The position numbers were made by a program, and so were the translations under genes. This document shows, one piece after another, positions 3,929 to 63,279 of a stretch of 64,000 nucleotides of DNA (within the stretch, counting starts at the first letter, position 1; each line of letters starts with the position of its first letter). Below the pieces are notes generated by a model. That model did no database searches and was not told the DNA's origin. It saw nothing but the letters and a program-made list of their open reading frames with translations. Source of the DNA: Podarcis muralis (lineage: Eukaryota); assembly GCF_964188315.1 (NCBI RefSeq), contig NC_135662.1, positions 86,428,001-86,492,000 of the forward strand, written 5' to 3'.

Positions 3929-3930
<2 letters not shown>

Positions 3931-5749: not shown

Positions 5750-5900
5750 TGAATCTATTTCAGTTCTGGGCTTCAGGACCAAATCAGCCTTGGTCACCCT
5801 AATGAGAAGGCAGTGGGAGGGCAATCCTGGTCAATATCGCAGTGTCTTTTGATGCCATTAAGCATGGTGTCTCTCTGGACTGACTCTGTGCAATAGCTAT
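5750..5900 (+). mobile_element. L2/CR1-group RT remnant
   Basis: LVNIAVSFDAIKHG resembles the LLDLSAAFDTIDHG motif. Confidence 0.55.
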
Positions 5901-7908: not shown

Positions 7909-8127
7909 TGTTCACAATAAACCTGGCTTCCTCTTATAATTTCTGGTGCTTGACTCTTCCTTGGCCTTGCCCCTAGAATGCCCATATCAGAAGCCAGAGT
8001 GACAATGTATCCTGTTTCACAGCAGCCCTCGTTTCTTCAGAATGGATAGTTTTGTTCTGTTTTTAAGATATAACACTTTATTGGAAGCTGTAAAAGGAAT
8101 ATAGTTGCAGCAAATAATGCAAATAAG

Positions 8128-8340
8128 TCGTCGTCTTCTTCTTTGGCAATCACTTGTAGCCGAGTAAGATTGTCTTCCATAAACTCGGTTTTAACAATGA
8201 GTCTGTAAGTGACTGTGGAGGCCAATTCTGGACCCACACATCCTTCCACAGTGGGAACATTGGTTTCTGGGTAGGAGTTGATCATGGTGTGGAATTGCCA
8301 AGTGTGCCTTCCTCTTAGCACGTTTCTCCCTTGCGTCCTG
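8128..8340 (-). mobile_element. RTE-clade LINE 3' end
   Basis: Minus-strand peptide CSHCGRMCGSRIGLHSHLQTH, the RTE C-terminal zinc knuckle, followed by a GAA-type tail. Confidence 0.85.
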
Positions 8341-8719
8341 GAGATGATTTGTAAATGCAAATAAGTAGACCATAACAGTCTTATGTCATTCACACATAAG
8401 GAAAGCCATAACCCAATTTACAGTCATATCTCAGGCATGTGATTCATTGTTAGTGGTCAATATGCATCTTCTCAGTTTGTGAACAGATTCAAACAAGAAA
8501 GAAACGCAAAAAGAACCGGTACCGGTAACACTGGGCATCGCGCAGCCGAATATTTCTAGTGTTTTGGCTTAATTATAACAGGTTTGTATCTCAGCTATTG
8601 CAGGTGAGCATCAAACCAAATGAAATGAATAACTGAGCATCTTTCTTGCCAAACAAGAAAGGCTTGTTTTGCCTTCATTGTAATTGGGAGAATTGCAGCT
8701 GTCAATGACTCACGGAGCA

Positions 8720-9310
8720 GATGTTTCATTTCTCGCTGCTTGGGGCCATTCACAAACCCTGCACGCACGCGCACGCGGCGGAAGTCCTTTCGCCCCTGCT
8801 GCTCTCCCCAAATCCAGCCCCGCTTTCCGGGCTGGCTGCCGCCGTCTTCTCCGCCACCAGGGGGCTCTGCGCGCCGTAACGGGCTGAGCAAGGAGCGAGC
8901 AAAGCAGGCGGCGACGCGCAGCGGCTGCCCGGGCCGGGAGGCGGCGCGCCTATGCGCGCACGCAAGGTAGGATGCCTGCCTGCCGCATCGTAAGGAAAGC
9001 TGGTTCCCCTGGATGGCCACTGAATAATGTTGCAAAACAGACCCAGTGACCCAGCTCTCCCTCGCCCACGGGCGCGCGCGCGCGCACACAGCGATGCTGG
9101 GAAGTCCCGGGGTTTCTGCGAATCCATGGCGCCGGCAGCCAGCCGTGCAAGCAATTCCAGCGGCGGAGAGCGCCTTTATTGCGCAAGGCAGGAAGATGGC
9201 TCCGCGGTGGGGCTTCCTCGGGTCCTTCCCGGGCACGCGCGTCTCTCATTAAGTCGAAGGCAGTGGAGCTGCTGCTCCGGGCGGGGCGCGGGGAGCCGTC
9301 CTTAACTTCT
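8720..9310. promoter_or_regulatory. Unassigned CpG-island promoter, possibly bidirectional
   Basis: CpG-dense, with GCGGAAGT (ETS-like, ~8778), GC/CA alternating NRF1-like tracts, AAGATGGC (YY1-like, ~9193) and a CTCF motif. There is a minus-strand donor CTCC|GTGAGT at 8713 and a plus-strand donor AAG|GTAGGA at ~8966. Confidence 0.7.
8854..8867 (+). promoter_or_regulatory. CTCF core motif CCACCAGGGGGCTC
   Basis: 13/14 match to the CTCF consensus, inside a CpG island. Confidence 0.7.
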
Positions 9311-11264
9311 AAACGGAGATGTGTGGGGTTTTGAGGGGTGTTGGACATTTCGCTCTCTGCCTGCCCCCCAGAAACCCACTGCAGGGCCAGGTAGTGAAAG
9401 CTAGGTTGGGATTATACAATGCTCAAGGCAAGGCACTCCTGCTATGCTCAGACGCACTGACTTTTTATTACTTGAAAACATGTGAGGTTCCAGAGCAGGG
9501 CGCTCCCTCCAGCGTTTATCTCACAAACATGTGGGGCTTTTAAGGCGGTCGTGTTTTAGGGGGAAAGTAACTGGCAGGGAAAGGGTTGACCCCCTCCCCC
9601 CCAACCTTTTCTGTTGCAAAGCTCCGTCTCCCAAGAACACACTTTTTGGACTGGTGAAAGGGCCCGTGGGGTTCCTGCAGTGCTCGCCTTCATATCAGCT
9701 GGCCCTTACTGTAGTTGCATGACAGACAGGTGAGCCTCTGGGGCTTCTCCTTGGGGCTTCTCCTGCTTTTCCCAGGTGACTCATTCCTGTGTCCAACAAG
9801 AAATGCCGCCCATTCTTTTTCCAGCTTCCTCTCAGCGTTTCTGGCCTCCCTTTCCAGATATGTTTTCTTAAAGGCTTTTGTTTCTGTAGCAAGCCTGAAA
9901 CTGCTCCAGCTTCATTAAAGAGAAAAGGCTAAACCACAACACGGCTTGCATTAAAGGTGAGCCACACAGACTGCTTGGATTGCAACCTTCCGTTGAAAGA
10001 GCTCCGCAGCTCACATAGAACCATCCAATTCCTTGGCAACTTTCCGTGCTTAGGCTCCCAGTATATCTCTACATTTAGCCAGCGGGAAAGAAAACGTGAG
10101 CCCTTAGCTCTGGGACATATGAGGAAGAGAGGTCCTCTGGTCATATGCAGAGTGCATTTCCACAAACACTGAGTGCTAGTCACAACCCACCTAGGATTGT
10201 GGGATTTAAGAGCAAGGCTTCCAGATGGGAAGATGCAAGCTCTACAGAGCCCTAATTCCCACCACTGGTTGTTTTGTTTTTAAAAAATGAAATAACCACT
10301 GTCAGTTTCTCTAAACACTAGTCCCATTTCAGACAGATAGTTAGCCCAGTGGTACACTCTTCTCTATATGCCACTGCAGTTACTCTCAGTGGTTGTAACT
10401 GCTGTGGACACTCTCTCATGGTCTGGGAAGCAGCATGTATTTTTTCTTCTTCTCTACTACATGCTGTGGCTCACCCTCTAATTCAAAAGACTGCTGCTGA
10501 GTGGATCTCATCACTTTGCAGCTACACAACATGCCATTAGCCCCTGCTTAGCACAAACCTTTTTTTCCATGTCCATGGAAGGAAAAAGTGCATTCTGCCA
10601 GGTGACCCTGTAAATGTAAAACACACACACAAACTGGCACTTGAACTGGGAATTGTCCCCCTGCCCCGCCCGGTCTACCTGGTACATGGCTGTTTCCCTA
10701 CACAGAGCCAATCTGTTTCTAGAACAGAACGCAACCTGGTCTCCGTGTCCACTCTCTTTGCTGCAGTGCCCTTTCCCCAACTCTTCCGTTCCTCAACTTC
10801 AGAATAGAGTTTGTGATCATCTGGAGGTAGCGGAAATAGTGGTGAAGTTTGACATCAGTCAGATTTTCCCAACCTCACCCGAGTTGGGATGGAGCCTTTG
10901 ATCTTACGTTTTATCCTTCCCTCGCAGCTTTAAACTGGTGGCATAAGAACTGCTTTCCCATGACATGCACAACTTCCCATCATAGGCACGTTACAGGCCA
11001 CAGGTTGGATCAGAGTCCTGGAGAAATCAATGGGAAAGAATAAATTGGCCGTGACTAACTTTTCACAACAAATTGGGGCTTAAGCCCAACTAATTTTGTC
11101 TGGGTGACCTAACCCAGGAGCGGGGAACCTCAGGCCAGGGGGCCACATGCAGCCCCCCCCCACGCCCACCTGACTTTCAGAACTCGTCCCAGAGCACCCC
11201 ACCCCCTTTGAAGTGGCTTTGGCCTGGCCTGGCTGGGGTGTGACCTTGAACTCTGAGCAGGGCC

Positions 11265-11495
11265 AGGAAGGTACAACAAGGGTCATCTAGTCCAACCCAC
11301 TGAAACGCAGGAATTACAGCTTAAGAATCCACGACAGATGGACATCCAACCTCTGCTTTAAACTCTCCAAGGAAGGAGAGTCCACCACCTTCAGAGGGAT
11401 GTTTCTTCCTGATGTTTAGTTAGAATTTCCTTTCTTCAAACTTGAATCCATTGGTTCGGGTCCAACCCTCCAGAGCAGGAGAAAACAAGCTTGCA
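11265..11495 (-). mobile_element. CR1 LINE 3' fragment
   Basis: GGGTCATCTAGTCCAACC...AAGGAAGGAGAGTCCACCACC, the typical squamate CR1 3' end in reverse. Confidence 0.75.
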
Positions 11496-11809
11496 GTTCT
11501 TGTTTGTTTGCTAAACTTTTTTTCTTTTCTTTTTTTTGCACATCCATTATATAGCTCCAGTTTTTCCTTTTGTTAACTAGATCCTTTCAGAATTCAAGGA
11601 AATTGCATTGGTTAGTTAATTCAAAGAAATGAAGGTTATTATTAATGAGATGTTGCAGTTGCAGTTCTCATGTTAACAATTTATATATAACATGCTGACA
11701 CTTAGTCTTATAAAGCTTTCTTCTGCAGATTTCTACAGTAACCCACATAAGTTCAAAATATATAATGTTAAATGTCGAGCCTCAAATGTTGTTCTTAAAT
11801 GTTTTACAT

Positions 11810-11938
11810 TAGGCATAGGCAAACTCGGCCCTCCAGATGTTTTGGGACTACATCATCCCTGACCACTGGTCCTGTTAGCTAGGGATGATGGGAGTTGTAG
11901 GCCAAAAACATCTGGAGGGCCGAGTTTGCCTATGCCTG
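11810..11938. mobile_element. Palindromic hAT-type MITE
   Basis: Long TIRs AGGCATAGGCAAACTCGGCCCTCCAGATGTTTT and an 8-bp TSD TTTTACAT. Confidence 0.85.
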
Positions 11939-12376
11939 TTTTACATTGATAAAAACATCTATCATGAAGTAAAATTCCCTTCTGTAAAGAAAAAAAAATG
12001 TTTTAAAATTATTGTTTGGCAGCAATCTTTCTCAATTCAAGATGGTCACCGATCTGTGAGGCAGGGTGAGGCAGCTGATCTCACCATTTTATAGTTTGAT
12101 TGTCCTTTTATTGTTTTATTTTATTGTTTTACTGCCCTATTTTATCATTTAATGGTTTTACTTCCTTGTTATCTCGCCAGTCAAATGCAATCTTTCACAT
12201 CTAGCAAATTTTGCTCATACTTTTGAGAGGTCCATCCCAGCTCAGTTTATTCTCTGCCTTTCCAAGTTTCCAAAATAGCTGCCAGACCTTTGTCCCTATA
12301 AATGTCATAGAAGCCTATGATTTCATCTTGTCAAAGAAAATAAAGAAAAATACAAAAAGGAGTACTGAAATATATA

Positions 12377-12795
12377 CCGTATTTTTCGCCCTATAGGACG
12401 CACTTTTCCCCCTCCAAAAATGAAGGGGAAATGTGTGTGCATCCTATGGGGCGAATGCAGGCTTCAGGAAGCTCTGCGCAACCCTTGGGAGACCGGCGCA
12501 ACTTCGTGCCGGTCTCCCAAGGGTTGCACAGAGCTGCCTGCATTCCGAAGCCTGCGGCGCGCTGAATAGTGTGCCCGGATTTCGTGCAGCTCTCCGCAAG
12601 CCTGGGGAGACCGGCCCGGCTCCCTAGGCTTGCGGATAGCAGGCTGTTCTGGGGGCTGGGGTCAGGGGAAGCTTGGGCTTCCCCCGTGCCAGCTCCGTGC
12701 CTGGGGGGGGGGAAAATAATTTTCCCCCCTTTATTCCCCCCCAAAAACTAGGTGCGTCTTATGGGGCGGTGTGCCCTCTGGGGCGAAAAATACGG
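12377..12795. mobile_element. Tc1/mariner (Tigger/pogo-like) MITE
   Basis: TIR CCGTATTTTTCGCCC at both ends, flanked by TA. Confidence 0.85.
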
Positions 12796-13190: not shown

Positions 13191-13699
13191 CTTCTTTCTT
13201 CTTTGGCGATCACTTGTAGCCGATTTGAGAGAAAATGCCTTCGGGGGCAAAGTCAAACCGCTGGAGAATCACAGCGCCTGCTGTGGCTGCAGAAACTGGG
13301 AATTCATAACTGCTGCATCCCACATTATTCTTGCTGCGTTGCACCACAAAGTGATCTCCCCGGGGTGCAAACCTGGGCAGTCCTGGGCTGCCCAGACAAC
13401 AAGACATGCCCTCATGTATTGAAATAAGCCTGTTTCCCTTTTTTCTGCCTCTCTACCAAGGAACTTGTGTGTTTACCTAAGGATTTGTATTTTCAGTAAT
13501 AGAGAAGCAACCACTGAATTCATTCAGCAGCCCTGGGTTGAACCAGAAGCCTGCATGGGACCTAGTAGAGACTTAGTCACTTTTAAAGTAGCCAGAATGG
13601 GGTGGGGGGGACGACGTTCCTACCCCCAAGGCGTATTGCGAGCAGATCCCTCAACAGGGAGGCCATGAGTCAGTACTATTCAGAAGACTGGATAAGCCC

Positions 13700-13940
13700 C
13701 CAGAGCTTCTATCTGCTATCTCACCATACTTGACCATAGCGTTCACCGACAAGCCATTTCTCCGTCCCTCTCTGCTTTTACTGCTCCATCTTTCCATTGC
13801 CCCCCTACCCAACTGGTTGCAGTTGCTGCACTTGGGCTGAGCGTGGAGAGGTCTCTACTCACTGGAGCCAAGGAGTTGCTATGCTGGCATTCCTGAATAG
13901 TTCCAAAACACAGCTCTTGCTCTTGAACAGTCATACACTT
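13700..13940 (+). mobile_element. L2 LINE RT remnant
   Basis: LNSSKTQLLLL resembles the L2 LNPSKTELLL motif. Confidence 0.55.
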
Positions 13941-16517
13941 GCAGGCTGCGGGGGGGGGGGGGAGGCAGTGTGTGGGGGAGAGGTTGCTAAGAGAGTGCTG
14001 GATTTTTTCAAGCAAGTAGTCAGGCAAGCTACAGGCGGGTTGTCTCTTGAAAAAGCAAAAAAGAGATTTGCTGAATCAGGGAAATACCACTGCCTGCCTT
14101 TGCATACTATTATGCTGCTACTTCCTCAGAGAGAAAAATAAATTGGGAGCTGTAACAAAAGAAACAAGAGCTTCCATCTTGCGGTAGGACAGTCTGGGCA
14201 TTGTTTTCTTAAGTAACCAAGAGTTTCCACCATTCATACTAAAAGTTAGATACCCTCAGTCTGGGCAAGTGGGAACCCAAACATGGAATATTTTCTTGGG
14301 AGAAGGGACAGATCTTAGCAAACTACCTTCATCTAACCAGGCAGATATGAGGAGCCTAACACAAGGTTAAGCCTAGTCCTGCGAGCAAACTGTCAACTTC
14401 AGGTTTCTATTTTCAGCTTTTAATTAAATAAAAGTAGGAGAAAAAGAAAGCAGCACAAAGATTAAAAAAACAAACAAGTGATTTCTAGCTAACCTCACAC
14501 TCAGTCAGTTCCTCAGTTACTTTCAGCAGCCTGCAATAAAGTGCAGCATCGTTTTATGTGCAAAGGACATAGAAGTTGAACAAGCAGAGTTCCTCAGGGC
14601 CAAGGGAGGGCATAACTAAAAAACAACACCCCCCCCCCCAATTTTTATGTCTCATGTTTCAGGAGGAGCAATGATGGCTTGCTGTCCAATCAGGCCTGAG
14701 ATGGGTGCCAAGCACTTATCATTCATTACAGGATCTTAGGGAAACAGGTGTGTGGATTGAGAAGGATCTCCTCTTGTGTAGTTAATCTGAACGGATTCGC
14801 TAAGCAGGAAACATCCTCTTGCATAGACCCTGAGCTGAGCTCCATATGTTTCACTGTGCAATGTCTTTGAGGAGACTTTGGAATTCTTAAATGACCTGAA
14901 AGGTTGGAGCTGGTTCTTTGACATGGGGGCATTTCCAGGATGGCATTCGTTCTCTTTCCCAGCACTCCTGTGTGCTACATAAGTTTTGCAAAGACATATT
15001 TAAGTGAATAGAGTTGCCAAACAGCCTTTTGGACAGTTGCTAGAATCCGAGAACAGAAAGCCAGAATTCAGCCACACTGCCTCCTCATTGACCAGTCCTG
15101 TCATGCAGGGAAAGAAGCTGGTCATAGCATGGGGGGAAAGTGATGGCAAAACCACTGAACAAAATCATGTTCGGTTTTTTCATAGCAGGTAAAGGAGACA
15201 GGCCAGTTAGAAATCTCTCACTCGCATTCCTGCACACCACAGAAAAATGCAAGGATATATCTTAATTATGCACAAGGAGGACCAAACAAGTCCCCCCAAC
15301 TTTCCTAAAATTAAGAGGGGCTCAGTGGCTGTTTATGTAATCCCCCCCCCCAGTAATTAGAACAAGAAAAAGAAGGAGGTAATTACGGAATGTGAGTTTG
15401 CACAAACCAGATTGCATACCTATGTGGCCATGGAAGTCTGAATCTTCAAGGAGTCTTGTTCCTCCACAAATTGCTAAGATCTCAGAGAAAGATCAATTCT
15501 TCTGGTAGGGGGAAAATCTTACAGCTTTGTACTTACTAAACAAAACCAAATGTTTGGAGGCCAACGCATGCTACAGGAATAGAAATACATTCCAAAACCA
15601 AATTAAACAAAGGCCTGAAACCCCGTAGACATCCTTGTGCTGTTTTTATGAAGCATTTGGATTCTCATATTTCTGTAAGTTTAAACCAACTGTTGGAGCA
15701 GCCAATGTGCTTTGGCAAAAACACATCAAGTCCTCTCTGAATCTCTCTCTTACACTCAAGCAGTCATATAAACATAATATTCTTTTTTAAAAAGGTTTTG
15801 GAAGTAGCCCCCAAAGCAATTTTTCTCCTGTCTGTAGTAACAGGAGTCCCGAGATTCAAACCATTCCCTAAGGTATATTTCAGCAGAGCTGCCAGATCAG
15901 CACTATCCCAAAGCCTAGTGGTATGGAATGAGTTTGGTGTGCGTTTGTGAGTTAAATCTGATTCTTTATAAAGGTACTGTTTTAAAATGATATTCTTCCA
16001 GCCAATTATAATGCTGAAAACTCCTAAAACTAAGATTCAAGGACAGTAATTTGTCTGGATTACTAGACCACTCCAGCAGCCAGCCAACCTTTCGCAAATA
16101 AAGATAAGAGCACACTCCTAAGACACCTTGGTTCCAGTACGAACGACCTCCACCCGGTCTTCCTTCCCATCAAACCACCACACATTGCTGAAGGTTGTGT
16201 TCCCCCTGCTGTATTTGTTTGTCCCACACTGATTTACAGTTCAGAGCAAGTTTGTTTTTAGCTAAAAACCTACTTGAAAAACACAGTGGCATTACAGTGG
16301 TCCAGTTTGCATGTCACAGTAAACCGTAGTTGATTAGTTTACCATGAAAACGCTGAGCTGGACCACTTTGCTCCTCCCCCCAGCCCACTGGAGAAACGGC
16401 GAACTTAGCTTAGTGCTATATCATCTGCTGTGGATCATAACTTGTTTCATGCAAGACCATGGTTTGTTTGGAGGGTTCTAGATCATGCAGGGAGGAGGTT
16501 CCTCATTTCACACTTTC

Positions 16518-16872
16518 TTTTTAAAAATAATTTTTATTGCATTTTAGAAAATTCCAAATACACAATTCCAAATACACATAAAACTCAAACACCCCCACCC
16601 ACACCCACACAGAAACACACCCACAAAAACACATCTTTATTTCTTCTTCATTTACATTCATATTCTATATCTCACCTAAACGTATCCATCTCCATCATAT
16701 ATTAATTGACTTGTGTCTATCTCTTCATGGCTTCTTCACCTCTTTTTTATTTCCCCCTTTATTCTGTATTCAATATATATTTTACCTTTTATTTATTTTT
16801 GTGAAATTCAGTCAAAGCACAACCAAGTTTTGATTTGGGAGCTGTGTTTGTGCAAATATTTTTTTTAAAAAT
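16518..16872 (-). mobile_element. L1-like retroposed 3' fragment with 16-bp TSD
   Basis: CTCATTTCACACTTTC is duplicated at 16502-16517 and 16873-16888. The minus strand ends in AATAAA plus an A-rich tail. Confidence 0.6.
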
Positions 16873-17379
16873 CTCATTTCACACTTTCCACCTTGCACTT
16901 CAGCTCTGCACTCCCTCCCGTGAGCGCCTGCACACGGCATGAGTACTCCGAACACACAGTTAGGGCTCACGCCTCTCGCAAGTGTTAATGATTCAAATAA
17001 CAATATTTGTTTTGCATTCCACCAAGTCCTAAAAAATATTGTTTGTCACTGACTAAGTCATACTCAGAGCGGGCCCATTGAAATCACTGGACTTAAGTTA
17101 GCCAAGTCCACTGATTCATTTCTGTGCATGACTTCACCAGACACAACCCTATGTCACTGGAGATGGGGCAGCTGACCGAGGGCTGCACTCACCCTTGGTC
17201 CATCCTCTGTGGGGGCCGCCCCACTCTCCCTTATGCGTAGACAAACACCCGCAGGCAGGCTGAAGAACACAGGCTCCCTCCTCACCAGCTGACGTGGGTT
17301 ATTATTGCCCCCACTCAGCTCCTCAAATGGTCGGACTAATGACCAGGTGAGATTTGCATCCCCATCATGTAGTTTACAC

Positions 17380-17830
17380 CCCCAAAATGAGTGTTGAGGA
17401 GCTAGAAGAAGCTTCTCAATGTCTACTGCTCAATCTCCTGCAGATCCTTCTGAAAAAAAATCTGAAAGAAATACTGTACTTGAAAGGATAACAGGAAAAT
17501 GTCAAGTATATTTTTGGGAAATTGTATGAACTATTATTTTCATGATTTTGGGAAAACTATGGAACACAATACTGTTTTTATATCATATGAATGATATTTA
17601 GAAAAAAATGCAACTAATTTTCAGTGAAACATGCATATGGCTTATTTTATTTTATTTTGCACAGTGCCAGTGACTGTGGAATAAGCTGAAAACTGTTTCA
17701 ACAAAAACTGCAGGTGCTATTAAGCGATCTCATTGTGTTGTTTATCAAGCGTGAACTTGCAGGACAAATTTACTTTGGGGAAATAATCCATGATTTCACA
17801 ATAAAAAAGGCAAGAAGAAAAGTTTTAAAG
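17380..17830 (+). pseudogene. Decayed hAT transposase C-terminal (dimerisation) domain
   Basis: PVTVE*AENCF (cf. PVTVASAERSFS) and LFIKRELAGQIYFGEIIHDFTIKKARRKVLK*, with stops and frameshifts. Confidence 0.75.
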
Positions 17831-19627
17831 TAAATTGGTCAACTCAAAAATATATTTGCAGTCACATGATAGATTTTTTTTTTAAATCAACAGAAAAATA
17901 TATTTATTTGGATCAACCAAAAAATACTCTGCAAGCTTTGGGAAACTCTTCAGACTGGATGTTAAGTTAAACAAAAGTAGGGGGCGGGAAATGGCTTGGG
18001 GTGGGGTGGGGTGGGGGTGTGGTAGAAATGTCCAGTATGGGCCATGGTGTCATATCAGAAATGCAGGAAATGTAATTTCATAATTAAAACAGGTATTCAC
18101 ATGTGGGTTTCCTTAGTGGGACTGCACAGAGCCCCACTTGAGGAGCAAAAGTTACAGGCAAGCAAATCTGAACATTTGTTCCACTTAAAGTAAGTGGGAC
18201 TTTTCTCTCTCCAGACTAATTTTCTCTCATGCAGGCCTGGACTCTCTCTCATAATAGGGCAAGCAGTTAGGAACTGCAAGGAATCTGTGCCATCTTGGAA
18301 TGCAGCCACATGAGGGCTGAACTTTTATAGACCGAGGGAGAGCAAACCAGGTGTTAATGCAAGTCGAACAGCAAGGGGACGAGGAAGAAAATTAAGATGT
18401 CCTTGGGTTGCATAACTATTTTAACCCAGAGAAATTATTCCAGAATGCCACCCTTTTGGTGTTAGTAATTTTATTAATGGACAGCTTGTATCAAAAACCG
18501 ATGCTCTTTTAAAAACTATGTAGATGTTCGTGCTGTTATTATGAACTCATCTAATGTATTTATAGAATCTAGTAACATTTGCCAGCTAAATGAGGGCAGA
18601 TCTGACAAGCTTGTAAAATTCCATCAGTTTAATTTGGGTTCACATATTTAGCTTCTCTTTTCAGATAGAAGAGCCATAAATAATCTAAGAGAAAGAAAAG
18701 TGTGCTCCAGAGATAACCCAAGCTCCCTCTCCCAAGAATCTCTCTCAAGAGCAGACAGTGCCAGGCCCAGCCTTCTGCAGAATGACATGGCCTTAGCTAG
18801 GGCACCAGACTTTTGTGTGTCAGCAAACTAAAGGTAGCCAGTTGTTCAGTTTATTGTATTTTAACCCCCATGAGAGATGTAATTTGGATTTTCTGCCTCA
18901 CATATCAAAATGGCATCACCTTAACAGAGTTGTGTGAGGTTAAAACATGAGGTGTTTGGAGAAGAAAAACATCGTACTCCAAAGAGCTCCTTGGAGAAAG
19001 GTAAAGATAAAAATGGAGTAAATCAGTAAATTCAAATTGTTGTACAACCCAAGTATTGCTAATTGCATGGATCCCAAAACACACCTAGTCAAGCAAACCT
19101 TTAGAGCAGAGGCTAACAATGCACACTGACCAAGCACAGTTTGCTCCCCTGCACTAAAAGAGACACAGCACATCCCCAATAAATACTCCCACCCATAATA
19201 CATTGTACTTTTGCGCAGAAATCCACAGCTCCCTTTACCCAGCTACTGCTTAGCATTTCTTAAAGGACTCTCATTGTAGAAAACACTTTACGATTCTTAC
19301 TTGTAAAAGGTCCTGTGCATACACAGAGCAGCAGGATGGAACCCAGAGATGGGGTGATGTCAGATAGCTATTGTAGAATGAGGTGTGTTGGGGTCCCAGC
19401 CGCCCAGTGACAGTGACCTTGGCCTGCACCCCTAAGTGCAGAGTGTGGCCACTTCTTCTCCTTTCGGTGATGGTGGGAGAGCAGGGCCTACTTTCCTCAC
19501 AAGGGAGTGAAACAACAAGGGCCCAGGGGGGAAAGGCCAGCTTCCATCAGCCAAGCCCTAAACTGCTGCACCTGCTCAGGGAGTTTGATGGTTGGGGCTT
19601 CCCACACCTGCTTGAGTGGCTGGTTCT

Positions 19628-20860: not shown

Positions 20861-22279
20861 GATTCTGTGCGCTAGTTCTCAGTAAACACACAGAGGATTC
20901 AGCTGAAAGGCTTCCAGGAAGGTTGTCAGTGATCAGATGTCCTGCCTATACCTTCCCTTGAATGTGGGAGGCCAGCATCATTACCTGCCTTGAATTTCCT
21001 GGGGGTGAGAAGGCCATTATTCTCAAGAGAGCTGCTTCTGTAACAGAGCCTTCCCTTGACAAATAACAACAGGGATTGTTCTTGTTTTTCACCTTTTTAT
21101 TACAAGAGTGCATTCTCTTCCCTATTAATAAAACAGGATGGATAAATAAGGTCAAAAGTAAATAAAAATGGATTAAAGTCAATAGTCAATATAAATGCAA
21201 TTCACTTTGCTTCTCTTAGTCCCACTCATCCTGACCTTAAAGCAGGCATGCCGACAGATCTTCAGATTTTCCATCCTCTCCTCACAATTTTTAAGCCCTT
21301 CCCTCCTGCTCTTCCTCAGTCTGCTTGAAAACTTTGGCTTGTTAAGCTGTTGTCTGGTATTTCTCCAACAGAGGCTCCTCTCAAAACATATTCTTGACAA
21401 TAGAGCAGTTCACTGTTCACAAAACTTATTTCACTGTTTGCCTTTTCTGTGTCTCTCTTTGTAGACTTTGGTTCATTGTTACATGGCTAAATACGAGGTG
21501 CCATTTGGGCCATCTGGGATCTGTCAGAGGGTCCCTATGAGCAGAAGCAACTTGCAGGACAATGTGTCGCAGACAGAACCTTCCTGGCCAACTGTCCTGA
21601 GTCAGAGCCAGATTTCCACTGCTTCCCTCCTGTTACAGGATGCTCTCCAGGAAAGAGTACGCACTCCTTTTTGCAGCTTTGTGCTGGCTGAGCTCCACTC
21701 TGCTCTCTCCCTGGCTGGGGTCAGGTGTGAGGCCTTGATCTGTTTCTGATTAGCAGCCAGCAGCAGAGCTCATTAATTGTCCTGTGATCCTTGCCCTAAC
21801 TCAGAGCAGCTAACTCCATCCAGCCAAGGCTGGGGCAGAGGGCAACCCTTCAGGGACTGGGGGGGAAAGGCCACTTCCCCTCCCCCATCTCTTCTTCCAG
21901 CCGGTGCTTCAGAGAAAGACCCAGCCCCTCCCCGATACACTGCAACTGGAGCTGATTAACTTCCTTGGCCTTGAGGAACAAATCATTCTCTTCTAATCTC
22001 TCTCTCTCCCTCCTTCAGTAATTGCAGATCAGGTCCAATCCTTTTCACTAAAGTAAAGGAAGGAATCACTCCGTTTTTTGTCTGCTTCTACAATCTGAAG
22101 CTACTGATCTTCCCTTCCTTCCAGAGCGGCAGGCTAGTGTGATGCACTGAATTCTTCCCAATGACCACAGAAATGAGTGAATGCAAAGGGTGATTGATTG
22201 CACGTTCCCCAAAAGCCATGCCGATGAACCCAGGATGTACATTTGTGGTTACTATACTTAGCCACAACCTGTGATTTGG

Positions 22280-24140
22280 CAGTGGACTGGGAGCGGGGAC
22301 GAAGAAAGGCGCGCCGCGCGCTTCTTGGCTACTTCTTCAGCGACTGGGCTAACAGTTCGGGGGCAAAGGAGGAGCCACTGTCAGCCGGGATGAGCCAACT
22401 CTGCTGGATGGGATGCCCCCCCCCCTCGCCCCAATTAAGAAGGCAGACAGAATCGAGGACCGAAACTGGAACAAAAGCTTTTTTCAGCGGGGGTGGGGCG
22501 TTTGGCTCCGGAAATGCCCACAATTTGTCTGCATGGAGACACCAGGCAGCTGCATCCGCGGATGGTCACGAGGGGCAGATTGCGGGATGATCCCATCGGG
22601 GAAATATGGGGCTCCCAGCGCACGTGGCGCTTGATCTAATCTGCCGCCCACACAAAGGGGTCCCCCCCCCGCCTTTCCCGGCACAGAGCATCCATTCAGA
22701 GATGCTCATCTCCGCCCGCTTGCCCGAGGGAGGTGCGCGCCTTCGCTCTGCCCCCCTCCCTCCCCGGGCGCTGCAGCCCCCGACTTGCCAGCCAGCCGCG
22801 CTCTCACGGACAAAGAGCTGCTCTTCTGTTACCGTTTTGGATCTGGTCTGTGTTGGTCTGTTTAAAAAAAAAAAGAGAGAGAGAGAGATTAAACCTTTGA
22901 TCTGGCTGCGGAATTCCCTTTTTGGGTGGGATGGGAAAATGCGCCATGTTCTAACGGAGCCAGTACCTGAACGGGGAGAAATTCGGCTTTGGCATGGAGA
23001 GGAAATGCTTCTGCGGAATTTCTGCCCTGCCGAGGGGCTGTTGAAGGCGCAGTAGCTGGTTATATATACTGTATGCGTGTGATGACCCCCCCCCCCGCCA
23101 GAGCCGAGGTGTGAGTTCTCACATCCGCCCTCTCCCTTGCCCGAACCCCAATATTATTTCATGTTCATGACCAGATAAGACAAGCCGCCCTTCGGAAACG
23201 GCGCATTTATTATAGAACAGCCGAGATCGCAACGCTGTGCGCTGGCGGGGAGAAAAAGCCGCGCCGACTGCGAAGAGGCGCCTCTTTGGGTCAATTCTCG
23301 GGGGGGGGGGGGAGGGAAGCGGCGTTTCGCCCCCTCCTTTCCGGGTCGCCTCCAGCTCCGGGGCTCCAGCAGGCAGCGCTCAGCCTGCGCGCCCCTCGAG
23401 GCGGCCGACTCCCGCATCGGCGCCAGAGCCCGAGGAAGACCTCGTCACTATGGCAACAGGGGCTTGCAAGAAGAAGAGGAAGAGGAGGGCGCGTGCGCGC
23501 GCGCGTCCTCCCTCTTCCTTCTCCCGGCTGCCCGGACTTCTCTCGCGCCCGCCCCTCCTCCGCGCACCCAGACGCCTTCTTCGGCGCCCAAGGCGCAGAC
23601 CTCCTGGAAGAGGAGCGTTGTATTCCGGGCCCCCCTCTCTCGCGCACCTCCTCGCAGCCGCCGCCCAGCAACTCTCCTCGCGAGGAGGCTGCAAGGGACT
23701 CCGGCCTGAGATCTCTCCATGGCGACGCGAGATGCCGGACGGCTTTCCTCTCTGCCCCGACCCGGCACCCTGGGGTGCCCTCGCTCCGCACCCAGCGAGC
23801 CTTCCCGCGGCCTCTGGGGGCTGAGCCTCGAGGAAGCCTGCGGACAAGGGGAGAGGGAGGAATTATGCGGGGCGGGGCTTGCCTCCCCCCAATATTTTAT
23901 TCAAATTGGCACCTCTGGCTTCTTGTGCTCCTCACTCCGCCCCCACCATTCATCTTACCTGTTTTCCTTTTGCTTCCTTTGTTGCTGTCGGCAAATGGTA
24001 TTCTTGGGAGGGGCGAGGGACGGGGTCTTCTCTTTCGCCCCCCCCCCATTATGCTTCCTGCCCCTGTTTGGACTGTGTCCTAAGCAAAGGCCTTCTGCTG
24101 AAAGGCGCTAGGCAGAAGCGAAGGGAACCAGCCGCCCGGG
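22280..24140. promoter_or_regulatory. Large unassigned CpG island with RFX X-boxes and a TATA-like element
   Basis: CpG-dense. GTCACTATGGCAAC at 23444-23457, CTCTCCATGGCGAC at 23713-23726, TATATATA at 23061-23068, and donor GTGAGT at 23111. Confidence 0.7.
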
Positions 24141-30381: not shown

Positions 30382-30638
30382 TTACTTCTTCTCCTTCTTC
30401 CCTGACTTCTTCTTGTTTCCACCTCCGGAGGCTGCAGGTTTCCCATCCCGCTTGGCTGCAGAATTGGAGAGAGTGGCTGTGCTGCCAGGGATGTACACGT
30501 TCTGTCTGTAGTCAGGGACGTGCTGCAGGGTGAACTGGGGGCCATACCTGGTGCTGAGGCCCATTGTGCCTGCTGCTGTTGCTCCTCCTCCCAGAGTAGA
30601 ATTCCCATCAGGATTTGCGGCGGCGGCAGCAGCGGCTT
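30382..30638 (-). CDS. PCDHG: Pcdh-gamma constant exon 3, coding part ([19 protein letters not shown]...[28 protein letters not shown]...[10 protein letters not shown])
   Basis: Acceptor gtgtag|AAGCC. The characteristic lysine-rich gamma C-terminus ends with TAA at 30382-30384. Frame is continuous across the three constant exons (405 nt). Confidence 0.97.
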
Positions 30639-40010: not shown

Positions 40011-40099
40011 CATTTGCTGATGCAAGAATCATGGCTTGAAGCATTTCTGTATCAAACTGGTTGTTTGGCCAAGTCCCATTCTCATCCCCATTCTGAGAC
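40011..40099 (-). CDS. PCDHG: Pcdh-gamma constant exon 2 (89 bp, [29 protein letters not shown])
   Basis: Acceptor ctccttag|GTCTCAG, donor ATG|gtcagt. Length and peptide match the second gamma constant exon. Confidence 0.97.
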
Positions 40100-50427: not shown

Positions 50428-50486
50428 CCACTGGTTCCTGGTCTCTGGGCCTGAGAGAAACGCCAGTCTGTGTTAGGTTGTGCTTG
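50428..50486 (-). CDS. PCDHG: Pcdh-gamma constant exon 1 (59 bp, [20 protein letters not shown])
   Basis: Acceptor ttctcttgcag|CAAGCA, donor GG|gtgagt. Length and peptide match the recalled mammalian first gamma constant exon. Confidence 0.97.
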
Positions 50487-53949: not shown

Positions 53950-56385
53950 CCCATCAGAGGGACTCTGCAAAACACTGCCTGCCTGCTCAAAGGCAAGCAT
54001 GCTTTCTGCTGTAGTGGAATGACTGAAAGGTTTAACAAAAAAGAATTCGCCCTGTTCAGACATTGGAGAGAGACAAGACTTGTAGTGCTGAGCTCCAGCT
54101 CCGCCCACTTCAAGGTATCTGATAAAGCCTTCGGGATGTGGGCGCCCAGTGAAATTTATGGTGGATTTCCTGTCTGTCCTCTTACTACAGCAGTGTGACA
54201 TGAACCAGCTGGGGACACAGAGGCCAGATCTGAAGCACCTGGCCCCCACAATAACCAACATTACACAAGAGACCAGAGAGATGGCCACAAGAGAGATGAT
54301 AAGGTAGAGAGTTAGGCTGGGGGCTCTGGAAGGTGATTTGGGGAGAAGGTCCAAGGACTTGGAAAAGTCCTGCACAGCATTATCCTCTGAGGAAATCACA
54401 AGAACCAGTGAGGCTGAGAGAGACGGCACTCCATTGTCTCTTACTTCTATCACCAACCTGTGGGACACCCCAGGCTCCCTCAATGCCCGAACAGCCCGGA
54501 TCTCTCCTGAGTGGCGTTCCACTTTGAACGGGGTGGCTTCATTGGCATCCTGAAGCAAACTATATGACAGCCAAGCATTGTGGCCACTGTCAGCATCCAC
54601 AGCCACCACTTTGGTCACCAGGAATCCAGGTTCCACTGGGAGCAGAACTGGCTGGTGAAAGGCAGAGCCCTTGGAGACTTGCGGGTGCACAATCACCGGG
54701 GCGTTGTCGTTCTGGTCCACAACAAACAAGTGAAGAGTGGCTGTGCTGCTCAGGGGTGGGAAACCCGAATCCTTCACCTCCACTGCAACTTGAAAGACTT
54801 TCTCTTGCTCATAGTCAAGCATCCTGGATGTGTAAATGCTGCCATTCTCTTGGTTGATGTGGAAATAGGTCGAAATGGGTAAGCCATGATTTCCATTGTC
54901 CACAATGGAATAAGACAGCTTGGAGTTGACACCTGCATCCGGATCTGAGGCTGACAGAGAAAAAACTAGAGTCCCAGGGGAAGTATTTTCCTCCACATGG
55001 GCAGTGTATGAAGGGATGGAGAAAGTGGGTGCATTGTCATTGACATCTGAGACTTGAATAAATATGTTTTTGTGGGTGGATTTTTGAGGCATTCCAGAAT
55101 CTGTTGCTTTAATTGTGATATTATATCCAGCAGCCTTCTCTCGGTCCAGGGGCCCATTGGTCACCAGTGAATAATGTCCCTTAAAGGAAGACACCAGTTT
55201 GAACGGGATGTGCCTGGTAATCTCCAAGTGGACTTGCCCATTTTCCTCAGAGTCGTTGTCCTTTGCTTGGATCAGGGCAATGACTGTTCCTGTGGGTGCA
55301 TCTTCTTGCACTGGGCTAGAGAGGGAAGTCAGCATAATCTCAGGGCGGTTGTCATTGACATCAACAAGTTCCACTCTGATGTTGCAGTGACCCTCCATGG
55401 CAGGGGACCCCTTGTCTTTTATGTAGATAGCTATCTCGTAAGCATTCGCTTCTTCATAGTCCAGCAGAGCTTTGGTCCTGATCTCCCCTGTCTGGGGATC
55501 TAAGCTAAATAAGTCAAGGAGCTTCAGAGGTGCGCTATTGCTGGCTTTGAGGAAATACTCCATCTCTCCATTGGGACCTTCATCTAAGTCCGTAACATTG
55601 AGCTTAGTTACGACAGTCCCCACCTGGACGTTTTCCTCCAAATAAACTTTGGACACTGGCGGGTCACACACAGGGGGGTTGTCATTTGCATCCAGGACGT
55701 GGACTGTCACCTGGGCAGTCCCAGACTGAACAGGATTCCCACTGTCCAGAGCTGTCAGGACTAAGTGATGGACAGCGGCTTTTTCCCTGTCTAGAAGCTT
55801 CTCCAGCACAATTTCGGGCATTTTGACCCCGTCCCCCCTGACGTTAATGCTCAAGGCAAAATGTTCGCTTGGGCTAAGCTCATAGGTGGCAATGGAGTTG
55901 GAGCCCGTGTCCGGGTCTTCGGCGGCTTCCAGGCGCAAGCGGGTGCCCGGGTTGGCCACCTCGGTGATTTCCAAGGAAACCCTGTCCTTCGGGAACTTGG
56001 GGGCGTTGTCGTTCACGTCCAGGATCTCCACCTCCACCCGGTGGAGCTGCAGGGGGTTCTCCAGCACCAGCTGGAGAGGGAAGGAGCACGTGGGGCTGGA
56101 GCTGCACAGAGCTTCGCGGTCCAGCCTCTCGTGGACCAGCAACATGCCGTCGGCGAGGTTGACATGGAAGTAGTGGCGCATCCCGTCGCTGACCAGCTGC
56201 AGGCGGCGAGCGGACAAGCTCCGCACGTCCACGCCTAGGTCCTTCGCCACGTTCCCCACGGAAGAGCCTGGGTCCCGGTCCTCTGGGATGGAGTAGCGAA
56301 TCTGCGCGGGGATGAGCCCTGGCAGGGACAAGACGGCAGCCACCAGCGCCAGCAGCTGCCACGACCAGCTCTGCCCGCCGCCCAT
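53950..56385 (-). CDS. Last protocadherin-gamma variable exon (C-type-like); 812 codons from ATG at 56385
   Basis: ORF MGGGQSWSWQLLALV...QIRYSIPED has six cadherin repeats, TM LTLYLIISLVAISLVSCVMLVIVGA, and a phase-0 donor GGG|GTAAGA. The ORF track starts at an upstream TTG. Confidence 0.9.
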
Positions 56386-57000
56386 GCCTGGCTCCTTTGC
56401 GCGCAAGGATGGCCGTCTCCAGCGGCTGCCTCTGCTCCAGGTATCCAGCCCGGGGGTGGCCGCCGCTGCCTCCGGACCCCGCCGCAGTCCGGTGCCCCCC
56501 GCCCCGCCCCCCAGGTCTGCTCCTGGCGGCTCCGGGGTGACCTGAGAGGTGCTGTGCAGCGGAAAGGCGCGGGCTGCAGCTGGAGAGGCGGGAGGGGGGG
56601 AGCGGGGGGATTTTAAAGCGCTCGGATCAGCAGCAGCTCATTGGCAAAAGGAGCAGCAGAGAAAAGGGGCTGTGAAATGGATACAGACAAGCGGCAATTC
56701 CCTCCTCGGCGGCGGCGGCGGCAGCAGCAGCAGCGAAGCCCCCTCCCCGAAACGCACACACACCCTGCTGCTCCCCCCTCCCCAATCTCTCTTGCCACCA
56801 GTTTTCCCTCCCTGCGCTTCCCATTCCTTTCCCAGCGCAGCAGAGAGATTTGGAGGGCTGACCCAAGGGAGCCATTGGCCAGAAGAGCTCCCTTGATGCC
56901 CCTTTGGTGGAAAAGCAGGAATCGAAGGTGCAGAACGCAGACAGGGCGAGCTGCTGACGGCAGCTGTAACTCCAGGAGCGGGGAGGGGGCTACTCTACCC
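55850..57000 (-). promoter_or_regulatory. CpG-island promoter of the last variable exon; CCAAT box 56636-56645, TTTAAA 56612-56617, (CGG)5(CAG)4 at 56707-56733
   Basis: High CpG density extends into EC1-EC2 coding sequence, and the motifs are read directly. Confidence 0.75.
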
Positions 57001-57249
57001 TCCTGCAACCTCTTCGCTTCAATCCCCTCCCCCCTCCCCCTCCCCCCGCTCATAAAGAAAGAGAGGAAAATTAGGCACACAAAGCTTTGGAGCAGATAGG
57101 TGCAATGTATCACAGTCTATGCTTGAGACCACGCATTGATTCCTCACCCCCACCCCAGGCACTTCTCCTAGGTGCAGGGAAACTCAAAAGAAAAGAGAGG
57201 TGGTGCCATGGCTGGAACAAAATAGGGACACTACATGGAAAATTCTCAC

Positions 57250-59688
57250 CTTGCCAAAGAAGCTGGGTTCAGTGAGATTGCTGCAAGAGGCTGTCCTAAG
57301 TGTCAAATTAGGTTTCATGAATACAAATTCGCTAATGTCTGAGACAGGAGAAAAGCAGGATCTGTATCCGCGGGCAGGGGGTCCAGAAGTGGCCACTTGC
57401 ACTCCTATCATGGCATCTCCAGGGCTCAGCTGATAATGGCAATGTCCCATCACGTGATCTGAAGCATCTTGAAGCCCACCAGCTTTGCTTCCACAGCATC
57501 CAAAGATGGTAGATGTTGCACGTGAATCACGGCGGAGGCATCGAACTCCCAAGGCCACCAAAGCCATCAGCGAGATGGTGGAAATTGCTGCCAAGGAGAT
57601 GATAAGGTACACAGTCAATGTGGGAGGTCCCTCAGTTTCCACTGAGTGAGCTGTTAACCCCAGAAAGGTTTCAGGGCTGCTCTCCTCCAAGAGCACCATC
57701 ACAGTGACTGAGGTGGACAAGGAAGGATCACCTGAGTCTTTGACAACCAGGACAAGGTCCTGGGTAGGATTGTCTATGTCCTGTAATGCTCGCGTGGTCC
57801 TCACCTCCCCGCTACGGAGGGCCATGCTGAAAATACCAGGGTCTGTGGCTTGCTCTACATGGTAAGAGAGCCAAGCATTTCGCCCAGAGTCCAAGTCCAC
57901 TGCCATAATTTTTGTGATTAAGGCATTGGCTGCAGTAGATCGTGGAATTCTGAACTGTACAACAGAATCTTTCCCAGTAAAGGGGAATCGAATCCAGGGT
58001 GCATTGTCATTCTGATCTAGGAGGTAGATGTGCACCATGATTCTGTTGCAGAGAGGAGGGGTGCCACCATCACATGCCTCCACCAGGAATTGAAAATGAT
58101 TTGTATGCTCGTAATCAAAAGGGCTCTCTGCAAAGACATCTCCATTTGTTGGGTTGATGGAGACATAAGAGGTGAGGTCCTCAATCAATCCTTGCCCTGG
58201 GCTCGCCAAAACAGAATAAGACAAACGGGAGTTCTGGTCCTTATCAGAATCTGTTGCAGAAACTCTAAGCAGTACCACTCCCACTGGATTGTTCTCTTCT
58301 ATGACGGCTTCATAAAATGGCCTGTCAAAATGAGGTGGGTTGTCATTGACATCTGCCAGAGTTATGGAGAAAGAGGTGTGCTCAGAAAGAGGTGGATTCC
58401 CCAAGTCAAAGGCATAGATGGTGACGTTGTATTGCGGAGTGCTCTCACGATCTAGCTGCTCACTTGTGAGCAAGGAATACTGGTGCTCAAAGTCTTTCCG
58501 AAGTTTGAAAGGAAGGTTTCTGGGCAGATCACACCGGACTTTCCCTTGATCCCCAGAGTCTCTATCCTTGACATGTATCACAGCAACCACAGTGCCAGGA
58601 GGCGCATCTTCACCCATAGAGCTGGAGAAAGAGGTGAGAATAACTTCAGGTGCATTGTCGTTGACATCCGTGACTTCTACCATAACACTGCAGTGTTCCT
58701 CCATAGTAGGGGAGCCCATGTCCTTAGCCTCCACTTCAATCTCATAGACATTAGCCTCTTCAAAATCCAGGCTCCCTTGGACACGGATCTCTCCCGTAGT
58801 CTCATTGATAGCAAATATCCTGCGCAAGGCTTCTGAGTTATGGCTGCTGAGGGAATACTGCACCTCTCCATTAGGCCCTTCGTCCAAGTCTGTTGCGTTC
58901 AGCTTAATCACCAGAGTTCCCGGAGGAGAGTTTTCTACTAAGCGGGTATAATAAGTAGGTTTGTCAAAAACCGGATGATTATCATTGGCATCCAGAATGT
59001 GGACAGCAATTCGAATAGCGCTAGATTTGGGTGATATGCCCCCATCTTCAGCTGTCAGGACCAAGTGGTGGACAGCGATGTGCTCCCTGTCCAGGGGTTT
59101 CTCCAGCACTAGCTCTGGGAATTTGGTGCCATCTGTACGTGCCTTCACGTTGAGGTTGAAGTTCTCATTGGCGCTGAGGTGGTAGGTCTGCAAAGTGTTA
59201 GTTCCTACATCTGAATCCTGTGCGTGTGGGATGGGGAAACGGGCACCCAGTGCAGCCAGTTCATAGATCTGCAGAGATATTGTGCTACTTGAGAACACAG
59301 GCGCATTGTCGTTGATATCCAGAATCTCCACTTCGATGCGATAGAACTCCACTGGGTTTTCAATAGCAAGTTTGAGATGCAAGAAACAGCGCAGGTTCTG
59401 CCCACAGAGCTGCTCCCTGTCTATTCTGTCATTGACTATTATGATTCCAGTGTTCACATTCACAGAGAAATACTGGGAGTCAGAATCAGAAAGCACCTGC
59501 AGATTGGCAGCTGCAAGCTTTGTCACATCCATTCCTAAGTCCTTAGCAACATTTCCTACAAAGGCTCCTCGAGTGAGTTCCTCTGGGACAGAGTAACGGA
59601 TCTGTGCAAAACAGTCACTCAGAAACAGACAGAAGGCAAAGGCATGCACGAGTCCCAAACGCCAGGCAGAGTTTTCTGTTCTGAGCAT
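57250..59688 (-). CDS. Additional protocadherin-gamma variable exon (C-type-like) 3' of gamma-C5; 813 codons from ATG at 59688
   Basis: ORF MLRTENSAWRLGL...QIRYSVPEE has six cadherin repeats, TM LTVYLIISLAAISTISLMALVALGV, and a phase-0 donor AAG|GTGAGA. The ORF track starts at an upstream GTG. It does not match recalled human C3, C4 or C5. Confidence 0.9.
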
Positions 59689-60828: not shown

Positions 60829-63279
60829 CTGCCTGGGACGGTTCAGTGTATCAGTATGAGATAAGAAAGTATCAAAGTCTCTCGTCAGAGTACTTGGTTG
60901 AGGATAATCCACAGGCCTCATAAAGGTGAAATCACTTCTGTCCGAGCCGGGAGAATAGCTGGCTCTATAGCACTGGCTCTGGGAGTCTGTGGGCCTGAGT
61001 GTGACCTCCATGTATTTCAATGTGCCATCTGAGTTCAGTTGAAGCTTAGGGCTGGATTGTTTGAAAACATCCCTGGCAGGAGCACCACTCAGGCTGCAGC
61101 AAGAAGAACCCCTGGCTTTTTTATTCCGAAAGCATTTTGCAGACAGGATTATGAACGTAACGAGGGACACAATGCTAACTGCCACCAGCGCAATAATCAG
61201 ATAGAGGGTCAGGTCAGATTTTTCTTTGGGGTGAGTCAGGAAATCAAGAGACTGGGGCCTTTCCTCAGTTACTTTATCCTCCAATGAGACCACGATGGTG
61301 ACGGTGGTAGACAAAGGTGGTTCTCCATTGTCCTTCACTAGTACAAGGATTTTCTGTGCCGGGAGATCTGTTTCCTGGAACTCCCGAACAGTCCAAATTT
61401 CCCCAGTGTAGGGAGCCACTCGGAACAAGGAGGGGTCAGTAGACTGGGAAAGCAAGGAGTAAGAGAGCCAGGCATTGTGGCCAGAGTCTGCATCCACGGC
61501 AGTGACTTTGGTGACCACGTAGCCTGCCGACGCAGACTGAGGGATCCTCTGGATTGCAGACAGTTCCCGACCAGTCACTGGGTGCAAAACAACAGGCGTG
61601 TTATCATTCTGATCCATTATGAAGAGGTAGACAGTGACACTGGAGCTCAGTTGGGGTGACCCAGCATCATGCACCATGATGGGGATTTGCAGCACCTGCA
61701 GCATTTCATAGTCAAAAGAGTGCTGGGCATAGACATTCCCATTGTCTGGGTTGACGTAAATGAAAGACGAGACTGGAGCATCTTGAATGGGGCTTCCTGC
61801 CACTGAGTACGTGAGCCGGGAATTGTCCCCCTCGTCAGGATCAGAGGCAACCACAGTGCATAGCAGAGAGCCAGGGGGATTGTTCTCCTTCAAGAAGGAG
61901 TTGTAGAAGGGTTGAGAGAAGTATGGGGCATTGTCATTAACATCTGAAATGTTCAGCAAGATGGTGACGTCTGTGGTTAGAGGTGGGGACCCTGAATCTT
62001 GGGCCGTCAACTTGATAGTGTATCGAGAAACTGTTTCTCTATCCAGCTTCTCAGAGGTAATCAAAGAATAGTGGTTTTCAAAAGATTTAATTTTAAAGGG
62101 CAAGTTTGGTGATATTTGTAAGCTCACCTTTCCATTGGCACCTGAATCTTGGTCTCGCACATTGAAAAGCCCTACCACTGTCTCTAAAGGGGTGTTTTCT
62201 GGCACGGGGTTTACCAGAGAGGTAAGGAGAACCTCTGGGGGGTGGTCGTTCTCGTCTTCAACTTCCATTTGGATTACACAATGGCCTTCCATTTGAGGAA
62301 TGCCCTTGTCCCTGGCCCTTACATGAAGCTCATAAAAATGAGATTCTTCGAAATCCACAACTCCTTGGACACGGATCTCACCTGTGTGGGGATCCAAGCC
62401 AAACAACTTCTGGATGGAATCAGGTGTGTGGATTCCAAAGGAATACTGTATTTCCCCATTAGAACCTGCATCAGGGTCAGTTGCATTAAGTCTGAAAAGC
62501 AAAGAGCCTACAGGGATGTTCTCCGGAAATCTTATCTTGTACAAAGGAAGGTCAAATGCAGGCTCATTATCATTATTATCCAGGACCTCAATGGTGATCA
62601 GAGCTGTTCCTGACAGTACAGGATCCCCCCCATCACAGGCAGTCAGGATGAGCTGGTGTTCCGATTGTTGCTCTCGGTCCAAAGGTTGCTCTAGAACCAG
62701 CTCAGGTAAAAGCTTGCCGTCGTTCACATTCTTTACATTAAGTGAGAAGTGGGGGTTGGGGCTGAGTCGGTAGACACTGACTGCATTGGTCCCCACGTCC
62801 GCATCATGAGCGCTCTCCAGTGGAAAGCGAGACCCTGTGGCGGCAGACTCTGCTATCCTCAGCACAAGCTTGGGGGTGAGGAAACCGGGGGAATTGTCAT
62901 TTAAGTCCAGGATCTCTACCTCCAGGTGAAAGAGCTCCAAGGGGTTTTCTATGACTACTTGGACTGGCAAAATGCACCCCGAGCTTGCTCCACACAGGGT
63001 CTCTCGGTCTATCTTTTCATTCACTATCAGAGCACCGTTGGCCAAGCTAACTGCAAAGTACCTCTTGCTCTCCTCAGAGCCCAGCCTCAGCCTGCGACGG
63101 GAAAGGTCTGCCACCGTTAAGCCCAAGTCCTGAGCCACCTTTCCCACCAAGGTGCCCAGCTCCGATTCCTCCACCACGGAATAGTGGATCTGTCCTGTAA
63201 CCAACGCCCGGCTGAAGAGCAAAAACAAACCCAGTACTTGCCATTTGAAAGAGGGTTGCCGGGACAAATGTGGCTCCAT
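60829..63279 (-). CDS. PCDHGC5: Protocadherin gamma-C5 variable exon (signal peptide, EC1-EC6, TM, variable cytoplasmic domain; 817 codons, phase-0 donor)
   Basis: ORF MEPHLSRQPSFKWQVL... has six cadherin repeats (DRE, DxNDN motifs) and EC1 C-X5-C. The cytoplasmic segment KQSSPKLQLNSDGTLKYMEVTLRPTDSQSQCYR closely matches recalled mammalian gamma-C5. It ends CAG|GTGAGG in phase 0. Confidence 0.95.

Follow-up and report, generated by a model that had tools for sequence, protein, structure and literature searches.

The 64,000-nucleotide stretch of DNA from the wall lizard Podarcis muralis analyzed here (contig NC_135662.1, positions 86,428,001 to 86,492,000; hereafter the window) represents the 3' portion of the protocadherin-gamma cluster in this lacertid. 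Three variable exons, referred to as exons A, B and C, follow one another on its minus strand. Exon A, the gamma-C5 variable exon (60829-63279), encodes 817 amino acids (aa) from an ATG at 63279 and ends at the donor CAG/GTGAGG below 60829 (slashes mark exon boundaries). Exon B, gamma-c6 (57250-59688), encodes 813 aa from an ATG at 59688 with the donor AAG/GTGAGA below 57250, and exon C, gamma-c7 (53950-56385), encodes 812 aa with the donor GGG/GTAAGA below 53950; the mechanically called open reading frame (ORF) of exon C begins at a TTG at 56406, and its first ATG lies at 56385. In each of the three, Pfam analysis revealed one Cadherin_2 domain, five Cadherin domains and a Cadherin_C_2 domain, and each also encodes a signal peptide and a membrane segment. 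All three donors are in phase 0, match the consensus and lie 5' of gamma constant exon 1. The original prediction of three intact variable exons with phase-0 donors at these positions was thus borne out by ORFs, domains and donors alike, and exons B and C each display the features of a gamma variable exon, namely a single uninterrupted ORF, six cadherin repeats and a phase-0 donor. The order along the minus strand is C5, c6, c7 and then constant exon 1, which makes c7 the last variable exon and places both additional exons where C-type genes are expected. The constant region, also on the minus strand, comprises exon 1 (50428-50486, 59 nt, acceptor TTGCAG/CAAGCACAACC), exon 2 (40011-40099, flanked by AG and GT) and exon 3, the coding part of which, including the stop codon, lies at 30382-30638.

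To assign the three exons, each was queried singly against proteins, and scores were taken against solved mouse structures in the PDB. Exon A scored 469 bits over 320 aa against extracellular cadherin repeats (EC) 1-3 of gamma-C5, compared with 304 for gamma-C3 EC1-3, 320 for alpha-C2 EC1-3 and 468 for gamma-C4 EC1-4. The corresponding values were 330, 309, 339 and 442 for exon B, and 318, 295, 321 and 435 for exon C. Expressed per residue, exon A matched gamma-C5 best, with 1.46 bits, whereas exons B and C remained at about 1.0 against C3, C4, C5 and alpha-C2 alike, with a preference for none of them, and, measured against the pairing of exon A with C5, fell short of orthologue-level similarity to mouse gamma-C3 and gamma-C4. 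A word-indexed protein search gave identities of 61-65% over the full length between exon A and mammalian gamma-C5, 74-76% to turtle C5 and 64-68% to bird C5; exon A is 98% identical to gamma-C5 of Zootoca. Judged by its sequence, exon A is a true gamma-C5, in line with the original assignment of the upstream exon. In the same search exons B and C matched squamate proteins at 83-99%, turtle proteins at 71-81%, crocodilian proteins at 68-71% and bird proteins at 66-70%, and neither had a mammalian match above about 45% identity. Pairwise identity among exons A, B and C amounts to only 43-45%.

Exon B agrees in 813 of 813 residues with the Podarcis muralis RefSeq protein XP_077789600.1 and is 89% identical to the anole entry 'TPA_inf: protocadherin gamma c6 isoform' (DAA06629.1; name obtained via cluster look-up). 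Exon C is 99% identical to Zootoca isoform X8 and 91% identical to 'TPA_inf: protocadherin gamma c7 isoform' (DAA06630.1), and this anole protein shares a protein cluster with the best match of exon C. RefSeq orthologues of the two exons are annotated as isoforms in Podarcis, Zootoca, Pogona, Anolis and Sceloporus. With 89% and 91% identity over the full exons and squamate-only clades at a support of 100, exons B and C are assigned as the orthologues of anole gamma-c6 and gamma-c7.

This assignment was placed in a wider context with a quick IQ-TREE analysis (LG+C20; 62 rows, 805 columns) rooted on three mammalian gamma-A/B segments, from which fused models longer than 1000 aa (except the outgroup segments) and most near-identical bird rows were omitted. 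The tree revealed three separate clades, C5, c6 and c7, each with a Shimodaira-Hasegawa-like approximate likelihood ratio test (SH-aLRT) support of 100, and mammals were found in the C5 clade only. The C5 clade contains exon A together with sauropsids, marsupials, placentals and amphibians; the c6 clade unites exon B with anole c6, gecko, Varanus, turtles, a gharial, birds and two proteins of the salamander Pleurodeles; and the c7 group consists of exon C, anole c7, other squamates, a tortoise, a crocodile, birds and one isoform of the caecilian Rhinatrema. The three clades together are set apart from mammalian gamma-A/B with a support of 100 (the outgroup comprising three rows), in agreement with the published tree. 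Single orthologues of c6 and of c7 occur in squamates, turtles, crocodilians and birds, the one-to-one pattern that distinguishes C-type genes. Taken together, the tree identifies c6 and c7 as what are, by their sequences, ancient C-type paralogues and not recent duplicates.

Two further paralogue groups were observed in birds, turtles and Varanus that branch with the c7 clade, not with C5 or c6. Their members bear the name 'PCDGM protein, partial' and show 59-61% identity to exon C; the emu locus has products of about 940 aa that begin upstream of C5 (1-3900). These groups may correspond to the anole gene called gamma-c4, which has been tied to coelacanth gamma-22 and not to human C4 (Jiang et al. 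2009, PMC2764143).

The arrangement C5, c6, c7, constant exon 1 is kept in a turtle and in a bird. In the turtle Lepidochelys kempii, C5 occupies 10001-12445, c6 13470-15839 and c7 16693-19068, with constant exon 1 at 21232, and in the emu Dromaius novaehollandiae the respective positions are 3917-6349, 6898-9312, 10079-12436 and 14452 (coordinates for comparison species refer to each fetched locus). The caecilian Rhinatrema bivittatum has two C5-like exons and a c7-like last exon at 10088-12466, with constant exon 1 at 28286. This last exon is 59% identical to exon C and represents the oldest evidence obtained here. Between the C5-like exons and the c7-like exon lie c6-like pieces, one at 7506-7916 (62% identity over 137 aa) and a weaker one at 8216-8920 (40% over 242 aa), which look like the remains of a decayed c6; the salamander Pleurodeles, unlike the caecilian, has c6-like proteins. 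The view that the two exons are retained ancient paralogues, already put forward in the original prediction, is thereby supported by the tree and by the order shared among turtle, emu and, with its c7-like exon and c6-like relic, caecilian. The mammalian loci compared were those of one marsupial, Dromiciops, and one cetacean, Pseudorca. C5 and constant exon 1 are separated by 4.7 kb in Dromiciops and by 2.9 kb in Pseudorca, and no B- or C-like sequence was found in either interval, even at E<=10, which agrees in these two species with the premise that C5 is the last variable exon of mammals.

Splicing was examined by placing RNA reads on both exons and matching the loose ends of the resulting contigs to constant exon 1. 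In run X1, RNA from a sister lizard with a divergence of about 1%, contigs span 53950-56217 and 57250-58305, stop exactly at the donors 53950 and 57250 and then continue for 29 and 28 letters that are identical to window positions 50458-50486 and 50459-50486, the start of constant exon 1. As the loose ends reproduce the first letters of this exon, both junctions named in the original prediction as the ones to look for, 53950->50486 and 57250->50486, exist in cDNA, and the claim that two further isoforms are expressed and joined to the constant region holds for the sister lizard. No cover was present in run X1 over the intergenic interval 56244-56637 or over introns, and cover in run X2, which carries a Podarcis muralis label, was likewise confined to the two exons. 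Comparison of X1 with the window revealed 20 synonymous and 0 non-synonymous differences in exon C and 15 synonymous and 2 non-synonymous differences in exon B, and this total of 35:2 indicates strong purifying selection.

A separate signal was encountered in two bulk RNA runs, X23 and X24, where about 42 reads each are piled on 31 nt (55670-55700) with a fixed G>C at 55677. The pile was rejected as gamma-c7 expression, its reads carrying unrelated sequence on both sides, and is a short word common to the gamma-c7 exon and an abundant transcript elsewhere.

Exon C additionally contains an in-frame donor-like sequence, GAA/GTAAGA, at 54440-54447 on the minus strand, located after codon 647 inside EC6 (LVIE/VRDNG), with 54445 as the last exonic base. 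RefSeq models in seven squamates use this internal donor; in Podarcis muralis (e.g. isoform X6, 781 aa), P. raffonei, Pogona, Elgaria and two Anolis the products measure 780-781 aa and join codon 647 directly to the constant region, omitting the membrane segment, while a 765-aa Zootoca model reaches the constant region from 16 codons further upstream. The GTRAG motif is kept in turtle and emu c7 and not in the caecilian. None of the RNA contigs placed here uses the internal donor, and they read straight through 54445. The retention of GTRAG in lizard, turtle and emu, together with the RefSeq models in seven squamates, makes it conceivable that gamma-c7 yields a second product via the codon-647 donor, in which most of the ectodomain would be joined to the constant region without the membrane segment. 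Such a conserved isoform, soluble or acting as a decoy, would have no counterpart among mammalian C-type genes, although we regard this as unlikely.

For the promoters, the whole window was scanned with a CTCF consensus, allowing up to 2 mismatches. Upstream of exons A, B and C this consensus, which may not fit lizards, gave no CTCF-like match with <=2 mismatches, and the 712 nt that precede exon B contain no CGCT box. Exons B and C share GCCAATGAGC at -245/-260, and the region upstream of exon C is GC-rich (0.64), but none of these upstream features is decisive. The promoters of mammalian alpha-c2, gamma-c4 and gamma-c5 have been reported to be without a conserved sequence element (CSE)/CTCF site. 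From the lack of a CTCF- or CSE-like motif upstream of c6 or c7, and by analogy with mammalian C-types, it appears somewhat more probable than the opposite that the two genes are broadly expressed and not chosen through CTCF. Because the overall number of matches does not exceed chance, the absence of a CSE is weak evidence.

Two CTCF-like matches at 3625-3639 and 8854-8868, both on the plus strand, the first perfect and the second with a single mismatch, lie downstream of the gamma constant exons and are oriented against the gene direction. Their placement and orientation are reminiscent of the CTCF sites located downstream in mammalian Pcdh clusters, the total count in the window being at chance level. 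A CpG-rich island at 22000-24100 (GC 0.59 over 2 kb) is located on the downstream side of the last gamma constant exon, at a distance of about 6-8 kb, and the ORFs on both of its strands are spurious and GC-driven.

Gamma-c6 and gamma-c7 are intact, have orthologues that keep their place in the gene order, are spliced to the constant region and evolve under constraint. Overall, we consider it very probable that they represent two functional exons after gamma-C5, old C-type paralogues that mammals lost. Under this interpretation, each gene is transcribed from its own promoter, and its phase-0 donor is cis-spliced to the three gamma constant exons that all isoforms share. The products are isoforms of roughly 946-947 aa, in which a private ectodomain with six cadherin repeats is followed by a membrane segment, a short tail and the shared gamma tail. 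The order C5-c6-c7 would already have been set before the amniote/amphibian split; purifying selection would since have preserved c6 and c7 in squamates, turtles, crocodilians and birds, and mammals would have lost them. Since the exons share less than half of their residues with each other and with C5, c6 and c7 may each have a homophilic EC1-EC4 specificity of their own.

Several observations weigh against this interpretation. Full-length mammalian gamma-C3, gamma-C4 and alpha-C1/C2 are not among the rows of the tree, and the separation of c6 and c7 from C3, C4 and the alpha-C genes rests on PDB scores, C4 fragments and the published tree. Run X1 is on record only as 'RNA?' and stems from a sister species, its cDNA nature being evident from the splice itself. 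The bulk RNA runs X23 and X24, which are labelled P. muralis and of which about 12% of the reads were sampled, contained essentially no exon B or C reads, so that expression in P. muralis itself rests on RefSeq models and the exon-only contigs of X2. The current P. muralis RefSeq annotation gives gamma-c7 solely in the internal-donor form of 781 aa and not at full length. Finally, the CTCF-like matches in the window numbered 10 against 8.5 expected and were not above chance.

In mammals, too, the gamma constant exons are preceded by three C-type exons, and automatic annotation has given the names 'gamma-C5-like', 'C4-like' and 'C3' to everything, which would be in keeping with the three lizard exons simply being C3, C4 and C5 in a mistaken numbering, or with exons B and C being mammalian gamma-C3/C4 orthologues moved by a local rearrangement. 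The C5 orthologue, however, is the upstream exon and not the last one, and the per-residue scores of exons B and C against all mouse C-types are at the paralogue level. Fragments covering the C-terminal half of gamma-C4, found at the start of the marsupial and cetacean loci, share 47% identity with exon A and only 40-44% with exons B and C, and since these mammalian C4 fragments are closer to exon A, exons B and C are not C4 orthologues. The published tree with human C3-C5 contains no human orthologue for c6/c7 (PMC2764143). The mis-numbering was rejected on the basis of the PDB scores, the identities to mammalian C5 and the tree, and we regard a grouping with mammalian C3/C4 or with gamma-A/B, of which tree, PDB scores and published tree gave no sign, as highly improbable. 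Clustered protocadherin arrays are also known to evolve mostly via lineage-specific tandem duplication (PMC2764143), from which one might suppose that exons B and C are recent, lizard-specific and rapidly diverged duplicates of gamma-C5. The low identity to C5 and between B and C speaks against a recent duplication, as do the tree, the shared order of one-to-one orthologues in turtle and emu, and the c7-like and c6-like sequence in the caecilian, leaving this origin with a practically negligible probability.

More weight, albeit still little, has to be given to the possibility that both exons are intact and hardly used, either as part of the intron of upstream isoforms or with cryptic internal donors that lead to non-functional products. 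Two bulk runs of this species without reads on the exons would fit such a scenario, as would the squamate gamma-c7 models in which the internal donor removes the membrane segment. In the spliced contigs, both exons are nevertheless joined through their canonical donors, and intronic or intergenic cover is absent. In addition, the predominance of synonymous differences and a lizard-bird protein identity of about 70% show sustained selection along the entire coding sequence, also past the internal donor, and full-length RefSeq models are known in Zootoca, Pogona and birds. We thus consider disuse of the exons very unlikely and retain the interpretation of c6 and c7 as functional, ancient C-type genes.

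Sauropsids possess two additional C-type isoforms that are strongly conserved and were lost in mammals. C-type protocadherins do special jobs in mouse. There, Pcdhgc4 has been reported to have a crucial isoform-specific role (PMC6957209). A literature search for papers on gamma-c6 or gamma-c7 function returned unrelated matches only and, being kept in sauropsids and lost in mammals, the two genes appear to form a part of the ancestral C-type repertoire without functional study. The description of exons B and C is correct and is not new, as gamma-c6 and gamma-c7 were published in 2009 and are annotated in lizard, turtle and bird genomes; for this reason the window adds only a lacertid confirmation and a wider lineage picture. 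This comprises c6 orthologues across sauropsids, c6-like sequence in two amphibians (a salamander protein and a caecilian relic), the C5-c6-c7 order in turtle and bird with no relic in two mammals, as well as wall-lizard spliced transcripts and synonymous-dominated substitutions.

Compared with the mammalian gamma-C3, gamma-C4 and gamma-C5 genes, lizard c6 and c7 have the same gene architecture, the same location at the 3' end of the variable array and, jointly with C5, the same separation from gamma-A/B. With the consensus used, no CSE/CTCF-like promoter motif was detected, and in this respect c6 and c7 may resemble mammalian gamma-c4 and gamma-c5, which have been reported to lack it. They differ in being orthologous to none of the mammalian C-types and in lying downstream of C5, where mammals have nothing. 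The coelacanth, too, has five C-type genes, Lm-gamma-20 to 24, at the 3' end of its gamma cluster, a comparison taken from PMC2764143 alone. The closest known system is that of the anole, for which five gamma C-type genes, Ac-gamma-c3 to c7, were described (Jiang, Li, Ravi, Venkatesh and Yu 2009, PLoS One 4:e7614, PMC2764143), matching the mention of extra anole C-type genes in the original prediction. In that study, anole c6 and c7 had no direct human orthologue in a tree with human C3-C5, c7 was orthologous to coelacanth Lm-gamma-24, an orthologue of c6 was absent from the species set, the gamma-c genes were considered to be shaped by differential loss and not by duplication, and RT-PCR from anole brain verified the splice sites of the variable as well as the constant exons (PMC2764143). 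The lizard genes of the window are the same genes, sister to those of the anole in the tree, located as the last variable exons after gamma-C5 and spliced in the same way to the constant exons. The host is a lacertid, whereas the anole is an iguanian, and the range of c6 differs from that reported for the anole gene, as its orthologues are found here in geckos, Varanus, turtles, crocodilians and birds as well, with c6-like sequence extending to a salamander and a caecilian relic.

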